This document shows, one piece after another, positions 1 through 63,480 of a DNA stretch of 64,000 bases (the stretch's first letter is position 1; each line of letters starts with the position of its first letter). A model generated the notes under the pieces. That model did not search any database. It saw only the letters and a program-made list of their open reading frames with translations, and was not told where the DNA came from. The stretch lies in sequence record PP793740.1. One strand, 5' to 3'. Position numbers and translations under genes: made by a program.

Positions 1-565
1 CGTCCAGATGTTCATCAATAGCATTCCACATACGGATGATGTCAACTTTCTCGTGCAGACTAAGTTTACGATCGCTCTTGATATCTTCGTGATAGTTTTT
101 ATAACCGAATTCTTTCTTATCGGTATACATAACTCCATCCATCACGCGGCGATAATCAAACTGTCGTTCACCTACAGCATCACCTTGGATGTTATTATAA
201 GAACCACCATATCCATCAACTTCATTATTAAGATACATAGTTCTTAGACGCTCATGCGCCATAACCCAACGTTGCATAATTGGACCAGCTGTTTGTAGTT
301 CAGCTAATGTCTCAAGATACACAATGTTGTTCGACTGCCATAAGTTATCTTTCTTTGTGGTCAGATTCCGCAGTGCTTGAACAGCAGCTGATTCACTAAT
401 CATACTGTACATATTTTGAGCAGTATTAAAAAAGCTAGCAGCAGCAGTTGACATAGTTGAACGAAGTGCCTGACTACGCTCACCCAACCATTGAGTTGTT
501 TGCTGTGTAAGATGGCCACCTGCACAGATGTCCAAGAGGTCTACACCATGTGCATCTACAATCAT
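1..565 (-). CDS. Conserved jumbo-phage core protein, 3'-truncated by the window edge; syntenic with phiKZ gp59 (nuclear import factor Imp3 candidate)
   Basis: Missing from the ORF track. Hand translation from ATG at 565 (RBS GAGGTG) is open to position 1: MIVDAHGVDLLDICAGGHL...QRWVMAHERLR...HEKVDIIRMWNAIDEHLD. Third gene after the gp55/56/56.1 locus. Confidence 0.7.
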   Translation of the reverse strand, partial: MIVDAHGVDLLDICAGGHLTQQTTQWLGERSQALRSTMSTAAASFFNTAQNMYSMISESAAVQALRNLTTKKDNLWQSNNIVYLETLAELQTAGPIMQRWVMAHERLRTMYLNNEVDGYGGSYNNIQGDAVGERQFDYRRVMDGVMYTDKKEFGYKNYHEDIKSDRKLSLHEKVDIIRMWNAIDEHLD

Positions 566-1011: not shown

Positions 1012-1395
1012 TTAATAGATTTGTTTATCAAAAGAACAATTGATTGGAATAGTGATAACTTCATTAGTAATTACATGTTTACCTGTCTTTTTAAAGAATT
1101 GTGCAAATTTTGAAGTAGCTGGAATTACAAGGGTATCATCCCGATCATTATTTGACATATTGTAAAAAGTAAACTTACCGTCTAGGTTAAACCTAATGCA
1201 CCACTTAATATTTCGTATTTTGAAATCTATACCAAATCTTAAATGACCATCAATCAATTCAGAACCACCGTATTCATAAGCTCCGGTGAAATTCCAATTA
1301 ATTTCTGATAATTGGAAAGTTACAGGATGTTCGCCATATTCATCTTGTATGTAGTAACCATCATGAGCTTTCCAATAGATAACTAAATCATGCAT
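1012..1395 (-). CDS. Hypothetical protein (gp57 position)
   Basis: 127-aa ORF, RBS GAGG upstream, co-oriented with neighbours. Confidence 0.7.
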   Translation of the reverse strand: MHDLVIYWKAHDGYYIQDEYGEHPVTFQLSEINWNFTGAYEYGGSELIDGHLRFGIDFKIRNIKWCIRFNLDGKFTFYNMSNNDRDDTLVIPATSKFAQFFKKTGKHVITNEVITIPINCSFDKQIY

Positions 1396-1411
1396 ACTAC
1401 TAGCCTCAAAG

Positions 1412-1444
1412 AATTAATAGGGGATTCAAACTCCCCTATTAATT
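1412..1444 (-). terminator. Intrinsic terminator-like hairpin
   Basis: 13-bp stem AATTAATAGGGGA/TCCCCTATTAATT. Confidence 0.6.
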
Positions 1445-1454
1445 TATTTTGCTT

Positions 1455-1643
1455 TTAATCATTAAGCTTAGAGATCATTTCGACATATGCATCGACAAAC
1501 CTTCTGTTTACCACTACATCACCATTCCCGCAAGTAATATATCTCTTAGTGAATACGGCTACCGATCTGGCTTCACGTTCATCTCATTCGACTTGTGATA
1601 AACATTCCGGGTTACGTCGAATAATTTCACGAATATTAGACAT
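1455..1643 (-). pseudogene. 62-codon ORF interrupted by one in-frame TGA
   Basis: RBS AAGGGG, then MSNIREIIRRNPECLSQVE*DEREARSVAVFTKRYITCGNGDVVVNRRFVDAYVEMISKLND*; TGA at 1584-1586. Confidence 0.5.
1534..1541 (-). promoter_or_regulatory. Possible phiKZ early promoter core TATATTAC
   Basis: Exact TATATTAC on minus strand, but it lies inside the broken ORF. Confidence 0.35.
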
Positions 1644-1784: not shown

Positions 1785-1985
1785 TTACGACTTCAACCAT
1801 TCTTCTAATGGCGGTAAATACTTCTCATGCGCCCAGTTAATAATTGTTTCTACAACAGGACCCTGTAATTCAAGGTTACCTGAGATTTCATGTGGTTCAT
1901 CAATAGATAGAACCCATGTATGTGGAGCAATGCGTTCAGTTGCTTTGGTTAAATACACATCAGGCATTAACGTTAAATTAAGTTG
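1785..1985 (-). CDS. Non-virion RNA polymerase beta'-like subunit, exon 2 (phiKZ gp56.1)
   Basis: Begins CAA (Q) right after the intron terminal G, giving spliced NADFDGD|QLNLTLMP; 66 aa plus stop. Confidence 0.9.
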   Translation of the reverse strand, partial: QLNLTLMPDVYLTKATERIAPHTWVLSIDEPHEISGNLELQGPVVETIINWAHEKYLPPLEEWLKS

Positions 1986-3509
1986 CACTATCTTCATACA
2001 GCATCGTCAGCGACATGTCTAAAAATCATCTGGGTCATTTTCATATTTAAAAATGAACCCATTAATTGGTCGACGGTCTTTCTTTTTGAGTTTGCTAGTT
2101 ACTACTTTCTTTGATAATCCAAGATCGAGATATGCCTGCTTGGCTGATTTGTATTTCAAAATCTCGCCAGTTTCCACATTTTTCACAAGTGTGGTCTTAT
2201 TTTTAGCCTGACTATACTCAATGGATTCATCCCAGGTTGGCCATTCTGAACCAACCCGACGTACAATGTACCTATCCATAATGACTGGATAAATTGCATG
2301 TCCGCTAACTTTCAAAGAAATCGTACCTACACTAACCCCTATCGCCTCACTTGCTTTCTTTTGCGAGTCATATTTCCTGATTTCACCCGTAACGATATCC
2401 TTTATCTCAATACCGTCGTGCTCAAGAACAATTCCGTCCGTGTTAATTCCGCGATTTTTCAACATTCTCATGATCGCGGTATTCTTTGCTGATCCAATAT
2501 AACCGGTTTTGATTGCATTTCCATGCAACACATTTTCACTCTGGGTTACCCATTCTAGGTTATCGGGTACTGTATTGTCACGATCACCATCTATGTGGTT
2601 GACCACTTTCTCATTGATGGTGTTATCGTATTCAATAAATGTCAGTGCAGCTACACGGTGTAAATTCGTTCCTACATAGGTGCCATCATCTCGACGCAAT
2701 CCAAGATCTCTGTATCCAGTTGTCGCCAAACTTGTTAATTTAGCTGAACCTTCAAAAAGACTTATGACCTTGAGTTCATCATTGATTGCATAGCAGGTAA
2801 AACTAGGGATGAAATAATATCCTGGGAAGGTGGGAACCTCCAATCCTTCTTCCGGGAATTTCCAAATCAAGTTTCTAGGATGAATATTGTCTTCATCTCC
2901 ATCAGAAAACAATATTTCGCAGCGGCTAACAAACTCTAATGGCGCATGCCAGCCTTTAAAACACACTGCTATCAACTTAGTAACATGAATGGGTAGTCTA
3001 TGCCATGGTAATTCAAGAACGTAATGTCGGTTTATTGGATCTATCAATTTATCCAAAAATCGATCATAGACTAACCCATCCAGAGTCAGTCTATAACGCC
3101 CGAATGTACCGGGAATCACAATTTCTCTCGATTTGGGTATACGACTGTAAATAAACACATATCCTCCATTGGAAGACATGTCGCTGCTGTACCGTCCACT
3201 TAATATCTCCCGACATTAAGTAACTGCTCTAGCTTTCACTAGATGGTGAGACTATATCTTCTTCCCAGAGGGAAGCCTTCTATTTCGGACCACTTGGCCC
3301 TACTCTACTCCCTTGGCTGCTTTCGCAGTGGTTTCGATAGTCGTTGAACGTTCTTCCTATCTCGCCTCACGGCAATACGTAGAAGCTTCGCTGCTGATTG
3401 TCCAATCCTAACACTTTTCAAACCGTTACATTTTAGCTTTCGCTATCTGCTTTGGTAGTTAGGCTCTAAGGAGGTTCCAGCAATTAAGAAGGTTAGGAGA
3501 CCAATTAAA
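1986..3509 (-). mobile_element. Group I self-splicing intron with homing endonuclease
   Basis: P AATTGCTGGAAC (3474-3485), Q AATCAGCAGC (3390-3399), R GTTCAACGACTATCG (3335-3349), S AAGATATAGTCTC (3248-3260). P1 is exon GGAGAU paired with intron GUCUCC, with U.G at the splice site. Terminal G at 1986. Confidence 0.93.
2019..3179 (-). CDS. Intron-encoded HNH homing endonuclease (phiKZ gp56-like)
   Basis: HNH motif VVNHIDGDRDNTVPDNLEWVTQSENVLH; two C-terminal NUMOD1/IENR1-like repeats (KDIVTGEIRKYDSQKKASEAIG; KNVETGEILKYKSAKQAYLDLG). Confidence 0.9.
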   Translation of the reverse strand: MSSNGGYVFIYSRIPKSREIVIPGTFGRYRLTLDGLVYDRFLDKLIDPINRHYVLELPWHRLPIHVTKLIAVCFKGWHAPLEFVSRCEILFSDGDEDNIHPRNLIWKFPEEGLEVPTFPGYYFIPSFTCYAINDELKVISLFEGSAKLTSLATTGYRDLGLRRDDGTYVGTNLHRVAALTFIEYDNTINEKVVNHIDGDRDNTVPDNLEWVTQSENVLHGNAIKTGYIGSAKNTAIMRMLKNRGINTDGIVLEHDGIEIKDIVTGEIRKYDSQKKASEAIGVSVGTISLKVSGHAIYPVIMDRYIVRRVGSEWPTWDESIEYSQAKNKTTLVKNVETGEILKYKSAKQAYLDLGLSKKVVTSKLKKKDRRPINGFIFKYENDPDDF

Positions 3510-4772
3510 ATCTCCGTCGAAATCTGCGTTTGGAGCCTTAAGGCATAAAACTGACATGCTGATAGAATTATCATTAATGTCATCTTTTACTTTAGTAATA
3601 AAGAACTGCTGCGTAGATCCACGTTGAAGCGTTGGATTTCGGTGAAAAGTACAACCCATCCCTTTATAAGGGGCTGCTTCTGCAATTAGCTCTTTAAATA
3701 GATCTGCAATGATTTGGTTATATTGAAGTACATTCTCATATACAAATGAGAATGCTTCACGAGTTGTCATGTTAAACTTTGCTTTTAGTTTATTGGTTAG
3801 ATGATACTTTAATAATTGACAACCTACCCCCCAAGGGATATGTAGTTCATCATAATCATGCGGGTCACTAATAGAAGTGATTACTGCACGTGCCGTAGCG
3901 TTGAGACGAGCACCAAACATGTGACGCCGAGCAAGACCAGGCTTTTGAGCAATTCGTGATTTTGCGTAGATCTCGTAGAACTGGCCATATAGTCTTAGTC
4001 CTCGCATAGTCCTATTCTGAGCTTTAATTGGACTAAGTGGTACAGATGATGCATCAATACTAGCGAAGGTTAAGGTAGCATCAATTGCTGCTTCAATTGG
4101 TTTATCTAAGTAAGTACCAGATGTGGTTGATTCTGCTACGAAACAGAGTTTAGAAGGAACTGGTAAATATTTAGGGAATAACTTATCTTTATTCTGAGCA
4201 ACGAATTGAGCGAATTCGGATTTATTATTAGAGATAATATTTGCATCTAGTAGGAATTGGAAGATCTCATTGAAATTATCAATGAAGTGATTTAATCCTC
4301 TTTCAAATCCTCGATGCAGTAGCCTATCTACTTTCCTGCGTGTTTCCTTAGAACCAATAGATTCTACATCGTATCGATAAGAAGTATCAGTTAGATATGC
4401 TAAGAAATCGAATTCTTTAGTTACTAGATATCCGGTTAGCATAATGATTAAACGTGGGTTAATTAGGCTACGTACATGTTTTGGTGTACGAACCCACATT
4501 GATGGTTCGATAGGGCGGCTAGAAGTATTGACAACTGGAGTATTACAAATATCACAGATTACTCCGAGTTTATGTGCGTCTTCGATTGCTCGACAATCAC
4601 AGCTTACACTACTTTCAATTGCTTCTGAATCTTGGAAATGAGAATAGAAATGTCTATCAAATTCTTCTTTCTCATCTGAGTTACTCGTATTGTAATCATT
4701 GGCATAAATTCGTTTACCCGTAAATTGATCATGTACTTCATCATGATCAACAACTTTGGCATAAAGACCCAT
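3510..4772 (-). CDS. Non-virion RNA polymerase beta'-like subunit, exon 1 (phiKZ gp55)
   Basis: Zn-binding CDC...CDIC, RLNATARAVIT, RNPTL and catalytic NADFDGD at the exon end; spliced product about 487 aa. Confidence 0.93.
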
Positions 4773-4807
4773 ACCAAACTCCTATTTATCGATTAACAAA
4801 AAAAGGA

Positions 4808-4840
4808 GATATAAGCGGCCCCCGAAGGAGCCGCTATATC
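4808..4840 (-). terminator. Terminator of the chimallin transcript
   Basis: GATATA-AGCGGC stem, UUCG loop on minus strand, T-run follows. Confidence 0.75.
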
Positions 4841-4844
4841 AGTT

Positions 4845-5165
4845 TTTACAATGGACCACCAACGGAGCCTGGCTCGGTCCTAGTGTCGTCTACAAAGCTT
4901 AACCTCCGCTCTTCTCTGTAGCACTCTGGCACTAGGACCTTTTACCATCCATTGTAGTTTTTGATCACACGTCACCTTTTGAGTAACTCCTTTCGGTTAA
5001 GTGATCTATCATCCTCGTGTAGTGAGAGGTCGGCCTAGACTAAGTCCACTAGCCGATTACTTCACGGAACCTACTCCTAACCGTTGTCACCGAAGTGAAC
5101 CAGGTTCGCAGTATTAGAATTGGGATGTTACTTATTTAACATCCCTATCTACCGAGGTATTTCCT
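4845..5165 (-). ncRNA. Candidate structured RNA or 3' UTR downstream of chimallin
   Basis: Nested inverted repeats 4847-4855/4948-4956, 4876-4885/4930-4939, 4963-4968/5001-5006, 5030-5034/5052-5056, 5122-5130/5137-5145; no long ORF. Confidence 0.4.
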
Positions 5166-5166
5166 A

Positions 5167-7047
5167 TTAGTACCAGGTACCCGGTGCATTATAGGAAGGA
5201 GCGCCGTAGGTTTGACCCATGCTGCCAGCCATACCAACTTGTGCACTACCAGAAACAGCCATGTTACCCATACCGGTGTAACCAGCGAAGCGCTGTTGAC
5301 CGAAGTTGGTAATTAGGTTTTCCATGGTTACAGTTACACCAGCTGCTGCTGCTGCGGCATCCATTGCGGTGATGAATTTCGGGTTAAAGGTTAGACGACG
5401 AGCACGACCAGTATAGGTAACGTTACCTAGGTACATCTTGTCGAAGCCTTTACTGTTATTCATACGACGCACAATGTGGTCATTACCTACTTGAGTAGCA
5501 TACCAGGTCTTCCACTCTTGATCGTTACCTTCAGACATGTTCATGGCACCTAGAACGTCAAGATCACGACGGTCACTTAGTTCGCCATGCTCATCAGTGT
5601 AGTGACCGAGGTCTACTTCATGATGGTTGTCAAAGATGATCGGACCAGCTTCAGCTAGGTTATAGAACTGACGGAAATCAGTGCCATATAGGTTAGTTAG
5701 AGCTTGGAAGATCAGGCTAACTGCACGAGCTTGGTTTACGCCACCAGCTGCATCTAGGACTACTTGCTCAAGAGCAGAGTTGTCACCCATCGGATCGATA
5801 TCGATCTGGAATGCAGGGTTCTGGTTAACCATCTTGTTCATTAGCATTACGAAGTTGCTGTCGTCTGCCATGAATGCTTCGGTGCGAGTTTCAATCGCTT
5901 TACCTAGCTCTGAGTAATAACCAAGTGCACCAATATCACGCATCTTGCTGGTAGCGATCTTCGGCATTAGGGTACGAGCCCATGCCTGGGATGCAGTTGC
6001 ACGATACGCATTACCAAGTGCGAACAGCCACATTTCTAGAGTCCATGCTTGGATCCAGGAAGCCTTACGAACGTCAGTGATAACGATGTAAGGAGTGAAC
6101 TGCGGAGGTAGAACTGCACCAGGTAGAGTTACGCCGAACATACCTTGTTGCTGGCCAGTGGTCGGAGTCCAATGTAGGTCTACGAATAGACTAACTTGGT
6201 TTAGCTGGCTATCGGTATCATAGAACTCGTTCTCAGGTACGTTGGTTTTCTTACCACGGCTAGTGGAGATAACCAGGTCAGAACGAATCGGATTACCGCA
6301 GCTATCTTTAACCGGAATACCATTGTAGTCTAGGTTGCAGGTAAGCTGTTCGTTTTCTGCTTTGATGTGGGTCGCAATAGAGAACGGAGTCTCATTGTTA
6401 CGACGTGCGATAGCATCTTCACAGATATTAACAGATTCAACTAGTAGGTTCTTAACAGCTAGTTCATCTTTGAAGTCGAAGTCAGCATACACTGCACGGG
6501 GACCGGCAGATAGTACTTCTAGACCAGGGATGTTGTAACGGTTCCGTAGGAATTCGCCGATCTTGCTCCAGTATTGAGCAGTGAATACATCACGCGGTAG
6601 TACCTTCTCTTCAATGATGTCGTCAGTTAGACCATTGTTGATCTTGTGGGTACGGGGACGGATGCGAGTACCAGGTAGGTTATCGAGTACTAGAGTACGA
6701 ACGAATGCCTTCATGGAACCATTGATATCTTTAGCTAGTTTAACAATTAGTAGACCAGCCATACCAACTTGTTGCGCATCGCGATCGAAACGATGGATAT
6801 CGAAATCATCAGGTAGGTCCTGATGGCGGATTGCTTCTTCTTTTACTTTAGTGAATACTTGTAGGGCATCTGCTGAACGAGCATCAGAACCATCTAGCCG
6901 CCCAGAGCGACGCATTAGATGGTTAATGCCAGTAGTAGACCCAGGCGCGCCAGTAGGACGTTGAGCTTGACGCTGTGCAGTGGGTTGCGGAGCAGGAGCA
7001 GTAGCTTGAGTTTGAACGGTGCCGATTTCGTTTTCGTTAACAGCCAT
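5167..7047 (-). CDS. chmA: Chimallin, major phage-nucleus shell protein (phiKZ gp54)
   Basis: 626 aa with flexible Q/A/P-rich N-terminus and G/M-rich C-terminal tail; lies immediately upstream of the nvRNAP gp55 gene; early promoter; strongly biased codon usage; resembles recalled gp54. Confidence 0.9.
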
Positions 7048-40164: not shown

Positions 40165-40449
40165 TTAAGCAACTCTAGCGAACAAAAGATTACTGGAGTT
40201 AGAATTAATATGATAGTTAGACGATCCGTCAATCCATTTAGCATCGGAAATCTTGTTTACAAGCTGACCATCGCCAATGTAACCTAGGAAAGTTTTATTA
40301 TCATATACAGCAATTTTGATTAGCTCATTTCGTCCGTAGACTAGTGGCTTACCATTGAATGCTGTTACTTCTAAACCAGACATGTATCCATAAATTGGAT
40401 CAGGTCTGGAACTTGTTTCAAAGACTTTCATTCGAAGTCTCCTCTGCAA
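40165..40449 (-). CDS. Hypothetical protein
   Basis: 94-aa ORF; likely start MKVFETSS after GAGG. Confidence 0.6.
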   Translation of the reverse strand: MQRRLRMKVFETSSRPDPIYGYMSGLEVTAFNGKPLVYGRNELIKIAVYDNKTFLGYIGDGQLVNKISDAKWIDGSSNYHINSNSSNLLFARVA

Positions 40450-40497
40450 GAAAGCCCATTTTGGGCAAAAATGTCAAGCTTAAACTTGACGACATAT

Positions 40498-40523
40498 AGC
40501 CCTCCTGGTGCGACAGGAGGGCT
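40498..40523 (-). terminator. Terminator hairpin
   Basis: AGCCCTCCTG/CAGGAGGGCT. Confidence 0.75.
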
Positions 40524-40714
40524 AATCTTTTCAGAACGTACGGTGTTGTTATAATACTGCTAGCGAAAATACCCATGATAGGTAAGTAGCTAATCCGCAG
40601 TTCTCTTGGATGATACCTACTGACAGTGTAGTCGCGAATGCGCTGTTTGGAACCCCACTGGTTTAGCGGCCAGTGGGAATTCCTTTTATGCCGTCTCGAC
40701 CTTCTTTACTGAGT

Positions 40715-40930
40715 TTAGGAAAAATTGAAAACGATTTCATTATCATGCCATTCCCAGGTGGCCACAATGATAGATTCATCACTCCGCTTCAACAGCTTAC
40801 CCTGACCAAGTACATGTTGGTCGATCCACGTCAGTGGTCGACCTTCTTGTTCGGCCAATGCATTTAATACGGCTCCATAAGTACCAGCCTTATAATTACC
40901 ATAAGGACCATTATACATTTTCATTGACAT
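40715..40930 (-). CDS. Small hypothetical protein
   Basis: 71 aa, RBS AAAGGA. Confidence 0.6.
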   Translation of the reverse strand: MSMKMYNGPYGNYKAGTYGAVLNALAEQEGRPLTWIDQHVLGQGKLLKRSDESIIVATWEWHDNEIVFNFS

Positions 40931-46985: not shown

Positions 46986-47588
46986 TTATTCCTGGGTCAG
47001 TTCCCCAAGACGACCTTCAGCTTTCATACGGCGGATTTCCGAAATGGACTTACCGTATTTTTCAGCCAGTTCCTTTACGGTGCCTTCAGGGGCAGGTTTA
47101 CTCATGTTGCGAAAGTTTTGCTTGGCGATGTTGTAGTTTTGAGCTTGAAGAGTTCTCAGCTCAGAACGAACCAGAGCATTGCCAATGCACTGAGAGGTGA
47201 AAGTGACCATGAAAGACTTCAGCTTATCACGGTACGTATTGACCCATGCACAGGATTCATCCACGTGCGTGCACATGTACTCGGCGGCTTTGGCATATTC
47301 CAACAAGCCGACTGCATCGGGACCTTCGTCCTGATAGACCATCTTGTTGAACAGGCCCAGGGCGATATCGGAGGAACGCTCACCTTTTATGAAGGCGATG
47401 GCGTCTTCGATGATCTTGGTTTCCAGGTCTTTGTACTTGACCGGGTCGTTCTTGATCAACAGTAGCATGGCGTCGACCTTAACAGTCAAACCCATGTCGG
47501 CACCGCGTCGATCGATCAACTCGTTGTGCTGTTTCTGCGTGAACACGGGATCCATGTTCTTGAAAGCTTTCAGGAGACGCTGTTCCAT
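46986..47588 (-). CDS. Hypothetical early protein with C-terminal short HTH-like segment
   Basis: 200 aa ending TVKELAEKYGKSISEIRRMK. Confidence 0.75.
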   Translation of the reverse strand: MEQRLLKAFKNMDPVFTQKQHNELIDRRGADMGLTVKVDAMLLLIKNDPVKYKDLETKIIEDAIAFIKGERSSDIALGLFNKMVYQDEGPDAVGLLEYAKAAEYMCTHVDESCAWVNTYRDKLKSFMVTFTSQCIGNALVRSELRTLQAQNYNIAKQNFRNMSKPAPEGTVKELAEKYGKSISEIRRMKAEGRLGELTQE

Positions 47589-47765
47589 TTACTTGTCCTC
47601 TTTGACGTTGAATGCGTACATGGTGCATTTCGGCTTAGCCGGGTGTTGGCACCACTCTTTAGATACATTGCCCTCAGGTTTAGTGAGATCGTAATAGAAC
47701 TCACCACCTGCGGCAGCGATACCCATCAGTACTGCAATGAATCCCATTCCGATCTTTACTTTCAT
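47589..47765 (-). CDS. Small membrane/exported protein (58 aa, not in ORF track)
   Basis: MKVKIGMGFIAVLMGIAAAGGEFYYDL...WCQHPAKPKCTMY; coupled to both neighbours. Confidence 0.65.
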   Translation of the reverse strand: MKVKIGMGFIAVLMGIAAAGGEFYYDLTKPEGNVSKEWCQHPAKPKCTMYAFNVKEDK

Positions 47766-48160
47766 TTGGCAATGATCCGTTGTACGAAGTGTTGAAGGTT
47801 GGCTACCAGGCGTTCGAATTCTTCTTCGGTTACCTGGTCACGATGCGATTCCAGAAGTACTTCTACTTCCGGCAGGACGTTCATGGCGATATCCAACTGG
47901 ATACGGCTGATGAACTCTTCCGTTGTGATATTGCGATCACGACGAATACGACTTACCAGCTTGCGATGTTGTTCGCTGTTGCGGTAGGTCGAGATCTTAT
48001 CGATCAGGATGTCCGAGATACTGTTTTCGATCTGTTGTACTTCGGTCGGGCCTTCCTCTTTGTAAGTTGCCTTTACTGCCAGAATAGCTGCTACTGCGGT
48101 AGAGGTAACAGCAACTACAATGAGACCGAGTCCCAGTGCATTTTCTTTAATGAAGTTCAT
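47762..48160 (-). CDS. N-terminally membrane-anchored protein
   Basis: 132 aa; hydrophobic LGLGLIVVAVTSTAVAAILAV followed by helical domain. Confidence 0.7.
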   Translation of the reverse strand: MNFIKENALGLGLIVVAVTSTAVAAILAVKATYKEEGPTEVQQIENSISDILIDKISTYRNSEQHRKLVSRIRRDRNITTEEFISRIQLDIAMNVLPEVEVLLESHRDQVTEEEFERLVANLQHFVQRIIAK

Positions 48161-51379: not shown

Positions 51380-51420
51380 TAATTACACTTTTGTAATATA
51401 CCCTTTAAATAGGTTTGAAT
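51380..51420 (-). promoter_or_regulatory. Early promoter, repeat copy 3
   Basis: ATTCAAACCTATTTAAA-GGG-TATATTACAAAAGTGTAATTA. Confidence 0.85.
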
Positions 51421-51431
51421 ACATGACATAA

Positions 51432-51453
51432 AGCCTTCCCATTAGGGAAGGCT
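51432..51453 (-). terminator. Terminator after DHFR
   Basis: AGCCTTCCC/GGGAAGGCT. Confidence 0.8.
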
Positions 51454-51457
51454 ATTA

Positions 51458-51982
51458 TTATGTTTTAATCCAACGTGTATATTTACACAAATCTGTTTCT
51501 TTAATAATGGTTGATTTCCATTTATCCCATTTAATGATTTCTTTAGGGAAATAAACACAACTACTATTATCGATTTCCATCTTGACAGTAGTAATGTACA
51601 TTTCGTCTAAAATATCCTTTTTAATGGCTTCTTTATAAAGTTGAGAACCACCAATGGCCCATACATCCTTTTTAGTTTCTTTACTAAAATGATCAGCATA
51701 TACAAGAGCCGCATCTAGATTAGGGAGTACACCTAATTTATTATCACAGGATACTGGGTAATTACCGTTACGATATAAACTTGATGATACAACAATGTTA
51801 TTACGATTAGGTAACGGTTTACTACCTAAGGATAAGAAAGTATTTTTACCCATGATAACACAGCAACCAGTTGTCATTTCTTTAAAGAAAGCTAAATCCT
51901 CAGGTATATGCCAAGGTAATAGATTATTATACCCGATGACACCATTTAGGTCATGGGCAACGATTAATTTAATAGCCATCAA
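51458..51982 (-). CDS. folA: Dihydrofolate reductase (phiKZ gp4)
   Basis: IVAHDLNGVIG, LPWHIPEDLAFFK, VIMGKNTF, KPLPNRNNIVVSS, IGGSQLY. Confidence 0.96.
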   Translation of the reverse strand: MMAIKLIVAHDLNGVIGYNNLLPWHIPEDLAFFKEMTTGCCVIMGKNTFLSLGSKPLPNRNNIVVSSSLYRNGNYPVSCDNKLGVLPNLDAALVYADHFSKETKKDVWAIGGSQLYKEAIKKDILDEMYITTVKMEIDNSSCVYFPKEIIKWDKWKSTIIKETDLCKYTRWIKT

Positions 51983-60404: not shown

Positions 60405-60489
60405 GCCCGAATGGTGAAATTGGTAAACACAGAAGACTTAAAATCTTCCGGCTACGGTCTTGTCGGTTCGAATCCGACTTCGGGCACCA
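60405..60489 (+). tRNA. tRNA-Leu (UAA)
   Basis: GCCCGAA acceptor, GAAGA-CT TAA AA-TCTTC, long variable arm, GGTTCGAATCC, encoded CCA. Confidence 0.95.
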
Positions 60490-60498
60490 ATTTAAATA

Positions 60499-60574
60499 CG
60501 GAGTGTAGCGCAGTTGGTAGCGCGCCTGCTTTGGGAGCAGGATGTCGGGAGTTCGAGTCTCCCCACTCCGACCA
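60499..60574 (+). tRNA. tRNA-Pro (UGG)
   Basis: CCTGC-TT TGG GA-GCAGG, GTTCGAG T-loop, encoded CCA. Confidence 0.95.
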
Positions 60575-60595
60575 TTTTAATAATAGGTAAATAGG

Positions 60596-60889
60596 ATGGA
60601 TAATAAATGGATATCATGGGAACATCAAATTATAGGAACAGCTCTTTACGCTATTCTTAGTGACCCTGAATTAACTAATATTCAATTAGCTCAAGGCTTA
60701 CACTATCTAACAGAAGCAAAGTCTTCTGTATTACATGTTTGTAATAACCATATTACATTCACTGTAACCTATCCACATGGCACATTTAGAACCAATGTAA
60801 TTAGAGAGTGCCCTGCTAGTGATACAAATACATTCAAATGGTCAGGTGTATTAGTCCGTCAAAAAGATGGAACATTCTTACCAGAATAA
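60596..60889 (+). CDS. Hypothetical protein
   Basis: 97 aa, RBS AGG. Confidence 0.65.
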   Translation: MDNKWISWEHQIIGTALYAILSDPELTNIQLAQGLHYLTEAKSSVLHVCNNHITFTVTYPHGTFRTNVIRECPASDTNTFKWSGVLVRQKDGTFLPE

Positions 60890-60896
60890 ATAAAAA

Positions 60897-60973
60897 GGGC
60901 CTATAGCTCAGTTGGTTAGAGCAGGCGACTCATAATCGCTTGGTCGCAGGTTCAAGTCCTGCTGGGCCCACCA
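60897..60973 (+). tRNA. tRNA-Ile2 (CAU, lysidine type); often mis-called Met
   Basis: GGCGA-CT CAT AA-TCGCT; closely resembles enterobacterial ileX as recalled; C4-G69 and C5-G68 TilS determinants. Confidence 0.85.
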
Positions 60974-60979
60974 TATACT

Positions 60980-61001
60980 AGCCTCCCACTTGGGGGAGGT
61001 T
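60980..61001 (+). terminator. Terminator
   Basis: GCCTCCC/GGGAGGT followed by TTTT. Confidence 0.7.
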
Positions 61002-61025
61002 TTATACTGTCTCATTGAGGAAAAC

Positions 61026-61247
61026 ATGAATACAGTAATAATGTTGGTATTATCTATCAAAGTTGGATTATTTGGTTTCATTTCGACTAATGAAAGTAAT
61101 ATCCTATTTGAAAATAGGGAACAGTGTATTTCTCATCTGGATATTCTGGAACATAAATACAAGTCTCTTGAAGTTATTCGAAATGAGAATACTCTAAAGA
61201 TAACCGAAAGAGATAACCATTCTATTTATATTTTTAAATGTCTCTAG
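61026..61247 (+). CDS. Small protein with hydrophobic N-terminus
   Basis: Start MNTVIMLVL after GAGGA. Confidence 0.6.
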   Translation: MNTVIMLVLSIKVGLFGFISTNESNILFENREQCISHLDILEHKYKSLEVIRNENTLKITERDNHSIYIFKCL

Positions 61248-61543
61248 GAAAATACATGGAACATCAAGAACAAAAAGAACTATTGAGACAACCATTACAA
61301 ACACTTTATAATCTTACTTTTAGTCCCCGTTTACGTAATGGAGCGAAGGCTCCCGATTGGATTCACCTGACCGATGAAGTAACCCTATTCCCAAACGGAT
61401 TAGATATTACAATCAACGCTGTTACACGTTGCATCAAATGGGAACTTATCGGCGAGGATGTAAGTAACATTACTTATGTTGAAGCTATGTTCTTTAATAA
61501 AGGTCTTAAAGCAGTTAAAGCCTATCTCAAACATACGGAGTAA
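61238..61543 (+). CDS. Hypothetical protein
   Basis: 101 aa; probable start MEHQEQ after AGGA. Confidence 0.65.
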   Translation: MSLGKYMEHQEQKELLRQPLQTLYNLTFSPRLRNGAKAPDWIHLTDEVTLFPNGLDITINAVTRCIKWELIGEDVSNITYVEAMFFNKGLKAVKAYLKHTE

Positions 61544-61545
61544 AT

Positions 61546-61893
61546 ATGGATCATCTAACCCCAACGCAGAGCGCTGTATATTTCACATTTATTAGCCCTG
61601 AGTTTATAAAGCTAACTCTTGTTGAATCTTTTGTAGTGATCCACAAGAAACATCCAGAAGTAAAGCATTGCGTTAAGAAAAAGATTAGTGCTAATGAAAC
61701 GCAGTTTATCTTTATCTTCAAAGATGGGACTGATAATTTAATCATTACACGTAAAACTGAACCTTGCCCTGAACTGGATAGCCCAGTAGGCGATAGTATT
61801 AAGTTGTCCGGCGAAGAACTTAAAAATATTCTTGCTAAGTACGATCGTCCCAAGGATGGTAACTATTTCAAGCACTGGACTGATCGCCCGTAA
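61546..61893 (+). CDS. Hypothetical protein
   Basis: 115 aa, RBS GGAG. Confidence 0.7.
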   Translation: MDHLTPTQSAVYFTFISPEFIKLTLVESFVVIHKKHPEVKHCVKKKISANETQFIFIFKDGTDNLIITRKTEPCPELDSPVGDSIKLSGEELKNILAKYDRPKDGNYFKHWTDRP

Positions 61894-61945
61894 TAAAATA
61901 TTACTGGTTATGTAATACTATGTAGGAAGACATGTCCATACGTTT

Positions 61946-62022
61946 GCGCTCATAGTTCAGTTGGTTAGAATACCCGCCTGTCACGCGGGTGGTCAGGGGT
62001 TCGAGTCCCCTTGGGCGCGCCA
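61946..62022 (+). tRNA. tRNA-Asp (GUC)
   Basis: CCCGC-CT GTC AC-GCGGG, G73 discriminator, CCA. Confidence 0.95.
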
Positions 62023-62028
62023 TTTAAT

Positions 62029-62104
<76 letters not shown>

Positions 62105-63196: not shown

Positions 63197-63480
63197 AATA
63201 ATAATATTTATAACTATTTAGATAATTATACTGGCACGATGATATTATGTAAGAGTACTATAATAAAGTATTCTTAAATCTATCCACTAAACACACTCGG
63301 TGGTAGAACTTATTATAGAGTGTGTCTAAATGCCAGGGGTTTGCCACCCCTGGTTATATTCATTGTTACTATTATAAATTCATTTATAGATGAGAAAAGG
63401 TTTTATCACCTTTTCAAAATCGGCATTTAATTCCAGTTAAAAAACTGAATCTATGCTACATTGTAATAAAGGAGTCTATT

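Follow-up and report, generated by a model that had tools for sequence, protein, structure and literature searches.

A conserved three-domain RNA fold in the 3' part of the chimallin mRNA of phiKZ-type jumbo phages

Structured RNAs lying directly after the stop codon of a phage mRNA have been described in phiKZ (3'UTR_PHIKZ298, ~100 nt, in its 3' untranslated region (UTR); Gerovac 2021, PMC8545117) and in PAK_P3 (the non-coding RNAs (ncRNAs) ncRNA1 and ncRNA2; Putzeys 2024, PMC10914365). They are conserved within a genus, have no transcription start site (TSS) of their own and share the intrinsic terminator of the mRNA. We analyzed a 64,000-nt stretch of sequence record PP793740.1 (the window), which is the sequence of a phiKZ-type jumbo phage, and describe here an element with these same properties that follows chmA, the gene of chimallin (ChmA), the nuclear shell protein. 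All relevant genes are on the minus strand, so that the coordinates of the element, 4845-5165, read 5165 -> 4845 on the RNA. The element folds into three domains on the chmA-sense strand, and this fold is under purifying selection. The known 3' UTR ncRNAs measure 90-210 nt, consist of one or two hairpins and have been shown by Northern blot; the element, in contrast, measures ~330 nt, has 16 helices in three closed domains and is exchanged across genera. It appears to be a new, uncatalogued RNA, a large and modular variant of the phage theme of 3' UTR-embedded RNAs.

For an element acting in cis, the closest analogues are the attenuator and RNase III site of E. coli rplL-rpoB, together with the sites at which RNase III cuts the early mRNA of phage T7. 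Like the chmA locus, these are structured intercistronic spacers of highly expressed genes, and in rplL-rpoB a leaky terminator likewise separates a gene of very high expression from one for an RNA polymerase subunit. Their hairpins could leave a protective 3' end, as could those of the element. However, these spacers have no sequence or structure similarity to the element and lack its conserved junctions, its loops and its modular exchange, and related phages use a bare terminator. GOLLD, ROOL and similar Rfam families resemble the element in being multi-domain, supported by covariation, associated with phages or prophages and of unassigned function. Compared with them, it is smaller, embedded in the 3' end of an mRNA rather than free-standing and very narrow in range, with no match to them in Rfam at E <= 10.

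The original prediction was of a densely structured RNA filling the gap between the chimallin stop codon and its terminator, and this was borne out by folding energy and by covariation. From the stop codon to the U-run, the sense strand has a minimum free energy (MFE) of -139.2 kcal/mol, compared with -104.3 +/- 5.8 for shuffled sequences (z = -6.0); none of 100 dinucleotide shuffles folded as well, which answers the shuffled-control check, and the antisense strand folds more weakly (-117.3). When the 64 kb were scanned with a 150-nt sliding window, the lowest MFE among 1278 scan positions was that of 4801-4950 (-), at -60.9. Its z-score was only -3.8, however; many terminator-containing scan positions had a better one, and ~3% of all positions had z < -4. 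Thermodynamics alone does not single the region out, and covariation is the decisive evidence.

A consensus fold was computed with RNAalifold from an alignment of 10 phages (eight phiKZ-like phages, PA1C and PS119XW), with the terminator included and a spurious outer helix removed. It contains 114 pairs in 16 helices, which form three domains (A, B and C), each self-closed. The parts below, given in 5' to 3' order on the RNA, are taken from this fold and, for the domains, also from pair counts.

5010-5159, minus strand: domain A, a four-way junction
5153-5157 with 5013-5017, minus strand: H1, closing stem of domain A
5148-5151 with 5115-5118, minus strand: H2, in domain A
5137-5145 with 5122-5130, minus strand: H3 hairpin, in domain A
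5072-5113, minus strand: H4/H5 arm with a UUCG loop, in domain A
5022-5065, minus strand: H6/H7 arm, in domain A
5030-5041 with 5043-5056, minus strand: helix of the RNAalifold consensus
5007-5012, minus strand: A/U-rich linker between domains A and B, unpaired in the consensus
4963-5006, minus strand: domain B, a 44-nt three-way junction
4957-4962, minus strand: A/U-rich linker between domains B and C, unpaired in the consensus
4847-4956, minus strand: domain C, a three-way junction
4847-4856 with 4947-4956, minus strand: 10-bp closing stem of domain C
4876-4939, minus strand: long arm H12-H14 of domain C, which has a symmetric internal loop (AAG/AAG) and a loop that contains GGAG
4876-4885 with 4930-4939, minus strand: helix of domain C in the RNAalifold consensus
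4841-4846, minus strand: A-rich single-stranded linker between domain C and the terminator, unpaired in the consensus

All five helices that had been listed as examples in the original prediction are present in this consensus. The junction strands of domain A (GAUUCUAAU, UAGGUUCCGUG and UACA) are kept even in PhiPA3. Domain B is built from a 6-bp closing stem (4963-4968 with 5001-5006), the junction UUAA, a CC-GAAA-GG mini-hairpin and a 6-bp hairpin. The arm of domain C amounts to an interrupted duplex of ~20 bp, and the same domain has a short hairpin with the loop GCUCCG. Two loops of domain C (GCGGAG and CUCCGU) are both complementary and invariant and are therefore a candidate kissing contact. 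Segments that are unpaired and identical in phiKZ-like and PA1C-like copies include GGUUC, UACA, UUAA, GAAA, GGUAAA, AAG/AAG, GGAG and GCUCCG. The inter-domain linkers might conceivably be processing sites.

Covariation, the other check proposed for the predicted RNA, gave a clear answer. Over the 114 pairs and 10 phages, 99.1% of pair cells are paired. Compensatory double changes were found at 9 pairs, compared with 3.8 +/- 1.4 when the partners were shuffled (0 of 500 shuffles reached 9), and sliding the partners by 1-3 columns left only 0-1 such pairs and 33-41% pairing. The compensations sit in H1, H2, H3, H6, H7, H11, H12 (two positions) and H13, with four of the pairs in domain C. The sense-strand fold contains 10-15 G-U pairs and 0-1 A-C pairs; as a G-U pair is a mismatch on the opposite strand, the folded strand is that of the chmA mRNA. 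The prediction of a multi-domain RNA on the chimallin-sense strand thus holds, and the three-domain fold is under purifying selection.

PhiPA3 carries a strongly diverged copy, which adds independent compensations in H3, H6, H8 and H10. Its domain A has an insertion of ~170 nt and was for this reason compared strand by strand; folded alone, it gives the same four-way junction with unchanged junction strands. H3 reads GGGAUGUUA/UAACAUCCC in phiKZ, GGGGUGUCAG/CUGGCAUCCC in PA1C and GGGGUGUACG/CGUACAUCCC in PhiPA3, and H6 is retained in PhiPA3 as GUGGUAG/CUAUCAC. The closing stem of domain B changes from GAUCAC/GUGAUC to AACCAC/GUGGUU (two compensatory pairs), and one more compensatory pair, U-A to C-G, is found in H10, the hairpin of domain B. 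The H4/H5 arm, on the other hand, is re-written, with GAAA in place of the UUCG loop, and H7 is larger by ~170 nt. The junction strands of domains A and B are thus retained in PhiPA3 while the peripheral arms differ; such a conserved core with free peripheral arms is plausibly the pattern of a specifically recognized RNA.

The element is bounded by the following features.

5167-7047, minus strand: open reading frame (ORF) of chimallin (ChmA), the phiKZ gp054 homologue, 99.4% identical in amino acids to the phiKZ 'nuclear shell protein'
5167-5169, minus strand: chimallin stop codon in the ORF list, the 5' edge of the element
4773-5166, minus strand: gap between chimallin and gp055, with no ATG-started or conserved ORF
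4798-4840, minus strand: intrinsic terminator, seen in the sequence and in the MFE and consensus folds, made of a UUCG-capped stem of 14 bp (4808-4840) followed by UCC and U7 (4798-4804)
3459-4772, minus strand: downstream cistron, the N-part of the nvRNAP (non-virion RNA polymerase) beta' subunit, the gp055 homologue (ORF list and homology)

The gap of 394 nt is 100% identical to that of Pseudomonas phage vB_PaM_W10-2 and 94-97% identical to those of ~50 Phikzvirus records, including phiKZ itself (47,529-47,922). About 330 nt of it are non-coding sequence between chimallin and the terminator. As had been predicted, this gap is long and richer in GC (0.46-0.48) than the AT-rich spacers, the one upstream of chimallin having 0.25-0.29; the other spacers of the phage are short and AT-rich. 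The same C-terminal Tyr is found in all of 7 chimallins, and the chimallin ORF is therefore complete without splicing. A simple terminator scan overlooked the chimallin terminator because its U-run begins 3 nt past the stem. The gp055 start codon follows 25 nt after the U-run, which leaves no room for a promoter of its own, and gp055 therefore depends on terminator read-through.

Published transcriptomes place chmA under an early primary TSS and a middle secondary TSS within a multi-gene operon (PMC8244752), in many transcription units (PMC10914365), and co-transcribed with the downstream nvRNAP cistron (PMC12571901). RNA-seq contigs of cells infected with phiKZ cover chmA, the element and gp055 in one piece (4400-5900), with no joints. 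The element had been put forward as undescribed, and we likewise found no description of it in Rfam 15, in full-text literature searches or in the phiKZ transcriptome and RNA papers examined. Among nucleus-forming jumbo phages, phiKZ serves as the model, and none of its genes has been studied more than chmA, an essential gene that is already transcribed in the first minutes of infection and is the standard target for knock-down. In the phiKZ-type GenBank records inspected, the element is unannotated or mis-annotated as small 'hypothetical proteins'. Phage KEN49 (L017:110-226 (-), 286-381 (+)) and similar records annotate two such proteins inside it; these lack conservation and in all likelihood result from misannotation.

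The element is present in every phiKZ-like record. It was found nearly full-length in 54 of the 57 matching records, the others being a copy split by a record end, phiHQ and PhiPA3. The group of PA1C, PS119XW and BRkr also carries it, and the window and PA1C are 85.8% identical from just past the stop codon to the U-run. A covariance model of domain A (R2) gave E 2e-49 in the window, 1.5e-42 in PA1C and 4.6e-9 in PhiPA3. PA1C-like phage phiHQ has domains B and C only, with domain A replaced by an unrelated structured stretch. PhiPA3 has the domain A core, domain B and the terminator, the last at 97.4% identity, and its domain C is replaced or unrecognizable. Domain B alone therefore occurs in all four lineages (phiKZ-like, PA1C-like, phiHQ and PhiPA3). 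Covariance models R1 and R2 found nothing significant in the whole genomes of Psa21, 201phi2-1, Phabio, Noxifer and RP13. With exact degenerate patterns, there was no match in 185,579 prokaryote species (one genome each), and IMG/VR gave only PhiPA3 and a PA7-like record; the 20 pattern matches in metagenome contigs were all chance matches without extended similarity. Within these searches, the element is seen to be confined to P. aeruginosa chimalliviruses.

The history of the element conflicts with that of the flanking genes. The window and PA1C proteins are only 48.5% (chimallin) and 69% (gp055) identical, and those of PA1C and PhiPA3 are closer to each other, with 65% of amino acids identical in chimallin and 85% in gp055; the PA1C element can nevertheless barely be aligned to that of PhiPA3. 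The window and phiKZ differ at 20 of the 317 positions of the element, 13 of them clustered in 4874-4940, compared with 14 of 731 positions in chmA and 4 of 373 in gp055. The PA1C allele of the long arm of domain C is also that of the window, SL2 and T2P; phiKZ and KTN4 have a different one. Together with the domain swaps, this conflict points to recombinational transfer between co-infecting lineages and indicates that the element, or parts of it, has been exchanged laterally among P. aeruginosa nucleus-forming phages. Its high identity across genera is due to transfer rather than to extreme constraint. Co-conversion during intron homing was considered as the cause of the transfer and rejected, as PA1C-like phages are intron-less and the intervening gp055 was not co-converted.

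We then compared the slot between the chimallin stop codon and the terminator in other phages. A related terminator with a UUCG loop follows chimallin in all Pseudomonas chimalliviruses examined, including 201phi2-1, Viktualia, Psa21, D6, Phabio and Noxifer. In D6 and Noxifer, only ~25 nt separate the stop codon from the homologous terminator. In 201phi2-1, Viktualia, Phabio, Psa21 and phiHQ, the slot holds another insert of 130-330 nt that folds strongly and is unrelated in sequence (z = -5.7 in 201phi2-1, -4.9 in Phabio, -7.1 in phiHQ and -3.0 in Psa21). One part of these inserts, ~150 nt and here called module X, is common to Psa21 and to phiHQ, where it belongs to the stretch that stands in place of domain A.

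L006:4256-4483: slot insert of 201phi2-1, a long folding stretch
L008:4250-4536: slot insert of Phabio, a long folding stretch
L009:4259-4517: slot insert of Viktualia, a long folding stretch
L002:2694-2998: module X, phiHQ
L005:4410-4554: module X, Psa21
L041:2501-2588: module X, Ralstonia phage RP13

In Psa21, module X carries the annotation of a 'hypothetical protein' on the antisense strand. A part of it, ~90 nt, recurs in the unrelated Ralstonia phage RP13, within a tRNA cluster, 10 nt upstream of tRNA-Leu(taa). Its stem is fully compensatory, with CCCAGU/ACUGGG in phiHQ, CUCGAU/AUCGAG in Psa21 and CCAGAU/AUCUGG in RP13. Module X is neither in Rfam nor a tRNA, and its pattern had no match in the genomes of 185,579 species. 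Its position in the RP13 tRNA cluster argues that module X at least is a free-standing RNA gene, and suggests that the chmA 3' slot may be a place where such RNAs are parked and expressed. Separately, 201phi2-1 and Phabio were seen to have a GGGAUC-GAAA-GGUCCC hairpin in common, ~15 nt past the stop codon.

Several known classes of RNA or DNA elements were tested and rejected. With Rfam 15, there was no match at E <= 1 over 4000-6500 and none at the gathering threshold in the region; for the 386-nt stretch, only noise at E 5-10 was obtained, mainly from the terminator hairpin and a weak ribosomal-protein-leader match on H3, and the PA1C, phiHQ, PhiPA3, Psa21 and Phabio loci gave no matches. 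A tRNA or tmRNA was not found by ARAGORN in 4000-6000 or in the homologous loci, nor was there an RF00005 match. A group I intron was rejected, as there is no RF00028 match at E <= 10, while the true intron at 3227-3531 scores 74.8 bits; in addition, chimallin ends at the invariant Tyr as it does in element-free phages, and the RNA-seq contigs have no joints. The only ORFs are of 23-38 amino acids, start with GTG or TTG, are not conserved and have their frames broken by lineage indels of 1-3 nt, which speaks against a protein-coding gene. A repeated or mobile DNA element, of the kind of miniature inverted-repeat transposable elements (MITE) or repetitive extragenic palindromes (REP), did not fit either, with one copy each in a PA7-like record, PA1C, phiHQ and PhiPA3; no second copy was found elsewhere in the window.

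An Rsm/CsrA sponge of the RsmY/RsmZ type was likewise rejected, as H14, with its GGAG, is the only hairpin that has a GGA in its loop; when the sequence was compared with the consensus fold, the remaining GGA motifs were inside helices or at helix ends. The element resembles 3' UTR-derived small RNAs in that it directly follows the stop codon on the same strand and shares the Rho-independent terminator of the mRNA. Its size and unpaired runs do not fit that class, which is characterized by 50-200 nt and a conserved seed: it spans ~330 nt before the terminator, and its longest invariant unpaired runs are 4-6 nt. As to a riboswitch or attenuation leader of the downstream gene, the full-length RNA forms the terminator hairpin in its MFE fold, as does the consensus fold, and neither contains a helix that competes with it, the suboptimal structures not having been searched systematically. 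Pairing with the chmA 5' UTR was not significant (z = -0.6), and pairing with the gp055 start region was weak (z = -2.3).

What does this RNA do? The reading we tentatively prefer, with confidence that stops a little short of even, is that the RNA persists as a terminator-bearing 3' fragment and serves as an accessory binding platform or decoy, protection of the chmA 3' end being a by-product. An RNA of ~330 nt would be made as the 3' part of the chmA mRNA from the early and middle promoters of chmA, and the transcript would end at the conserved intrinsic terminator, with some read-through into the nvRNAP gene. The domains are modules that recombination exchanges between nucleus-forming phages of P. 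aeruginosa. Accessory RNA modules would be expressed from the slot, which lies between the strongest early gene and its terminator. They would survive as a nuclease-resistant 3' fragment sharing the terminator of the mRNA, and a host or phage factor in P. aeruginosa would find in their conserved junctions and loops a specific platform to bind, or a decoy; any stabilization of the 3' end of chmA would come as an extra. That the RNA accumulates as a separate species, has a binding partner and acts in trans is what we infer here. The modular, laterally exchanged and host-restricted distribution looks accessory rather than core. If the RNA does act in trans, it would be among the largest structured RNAs known from a lytic phage, and RNA modules, not proteins alone, would be traded as accessory cargo among jumbo phages.

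A number of observations weigh against this preferred reading. D6 and Noxifer have no insert at all, so the element is dispensable for the nucleus-based life cycle. Published phiKZ ncRNA screens do not report it, although their methods are biased to TSS-bearing or small species, and the RNA-seq contigs, of flat depth, show the region merely as contiguous with both genes. The effective diversity of the alignment is low, with three to four lineages and ~14 independent compensatory events. The single-sequence folds of the PA1C and PhiPA3 versions reach z-scores of only about -3. Finally, the fixed position at the chmA 3' end and the unrelated structured inserts found there would fit a sequence-independent role in cis equally well. 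The original prediction had offered a multi-domain 3' UTR or processed ncRNA, with roles in stability, in localization or export, or in scaffolding; this was right in kind, and the roles found no support. Because D6 and Noxifer build the same nucleus with a slot of ~25 nt, shell assembly in general cannot depend on the element.

That the element acts purely in cis, within the 3' UTR or between the cistrons, is a real possibility, if hardly a probable one. Its helices would shield the abundant chmA mRNA from 3'-to-5' decay or endonuclease entry and, with the leaky terminator, set the ChmA:nvRNAP ratio, possibly aided by RNase III-type cleavage of the long domain C arm, an interrupted duplex of ~20 bp. 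The position of the element speaks for this, as it is invariably between the chmA stop codon and the shared terminator, with gp055 25 nt past the U-run and co-transcribed with chmA (PMC12571901), and so do the unrelated but equally structured inserts in the same slot of other chimalliviruses. However, D6 and Noxifer manage with the terminator alone, and the invariant loops and junctions, together with the A and B cores kept in PhiPA3, are more than stabilization needs. The terminator hairpin is kept in the MFE and consensus folds without a competing pairing there (no dedicated search for alternatives was made), and complementarity is not significant for the chmA 5' UTR and is weak for the start region of gp055, with the z-scores of -0.6 and -2.3 given above. 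Module X, moreover, is found in a tRNA cluster too, with no chimallin gene nearby. Were the cis role true, the element would bear on the balance of ChmA and nvRNAP, and would be relevant to engineering or silencing the operon as well.

A bolder proposal is one that we consider rather unlikely. In it, the slot would be an 'RNA accessory locus' of nucleus-forming phages, filled with large structured RNAs that differ between lineages and pass between them by recombination, and the A-B-C RNA would represent a new trans-acting class (a decoy, a scaffold or possibly a catalyst) directed at a factor specific to P. aeruginosa, for example a defence sensor or a regulator that binds RNA, at a very high dose from the first minutes of infection.

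It is improbable, in our view, that the element is a neutral passenger, that is, the relic of a mobile or functional RNA (e.g., a decayed intron or ncRNA gene) spread only by homologous recombination between co-infecting phages. Such a relic could account for the lateral exchange, the replacement of modules, the divergence faster than that of the flanking genes within the genus and the dispensability in relatives, and the locus does attract mobile RNA, with a group I intron and its HNH endonuclease in the next gene. A relic would, however, gather helix-breaking changes, whereas here compensatory changes keep 99% of pairs; it would also not be expected full-length in every phiKZ-like genome, in which the other spacers are short and AT-rich. 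The lack of group I intron similarity even at E <= 10, the lack of a joined form in the RNA contigs and the single-copy state of the element speak against it as well.

A role in replication or packaging, with the RNA-DNA hybrid of the transcript priming replication in the style of ColE1 RNA II or a T4 R-loop origin, or with the inverted repeats as a DNA signal, draws on the lack of a recognizable primase in chimalliviruses, for which R-loops were proposed as possible initiation sites (bioRxiv 10.64898/2026.10.01.755736), on the early, strong promoter upstream and on a GC content above that of other spacers, but is very improbable, given that a folded free RNA, and not duplex DNA, is what the strand asymmetry and the 10-15 G-U pairs point to, that a strong terminator immediately follows, that the local profile has no GC-skew turning point at the site and that related phages replicating in the same way lack the element.

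The operon contains a second structured RNA, the group I intron RF00028, 1.3 kb downstream. Like the element, it is an RNA of ~300 nt and a lineage-variable insertion in the same operon; the two have no similarity, and the element lies outside any ORF and has no joined form in RNA contigs. Within 1794-3531 (-), the intron breaks the gene of the nvRNAP beta' N-part; its RF00028 match is at 3227-3531 (74.8 bits, E 4e-17), and it carries an ORF at 2022-3179 for a homing endonuclease with HNH and NUMOD domains. The match of exon 1 to the uninterrupted homologue of PA1C ends just past the DFDGD motif (3510), and the last 64 amino acids of the nvRNAP beta' N-part are encoded at 1985-1794, a stretch annotated as 'PHIKZ056.1' in phiKZ. 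The mass of gp55 was measured at 56 kDa (Yakunina 2015), which fits the spliced product. At this site, phiKZ has its intron and endonuclease arranged differently, and PA1C, phiHQ and PhiPA3 have no intron.

Other strongly folding stretches of the scan were 51401-51550 (-) and 63301-63450 (-), both with z of about -8, and runs of consecutive scan positions below z -3 were found at 40301-40750 (+) and at 1201-1550 (both strands). None of these four had an Rfam match at the gathering threshold; some may be terminators and others further structured RNAs. The window also contains a tRNA cluster at 60405-62104 (+), with tRNAs for Leu(taa), Pro(tgg), Met(cat), Asp(gtc) and Asn(gtt).

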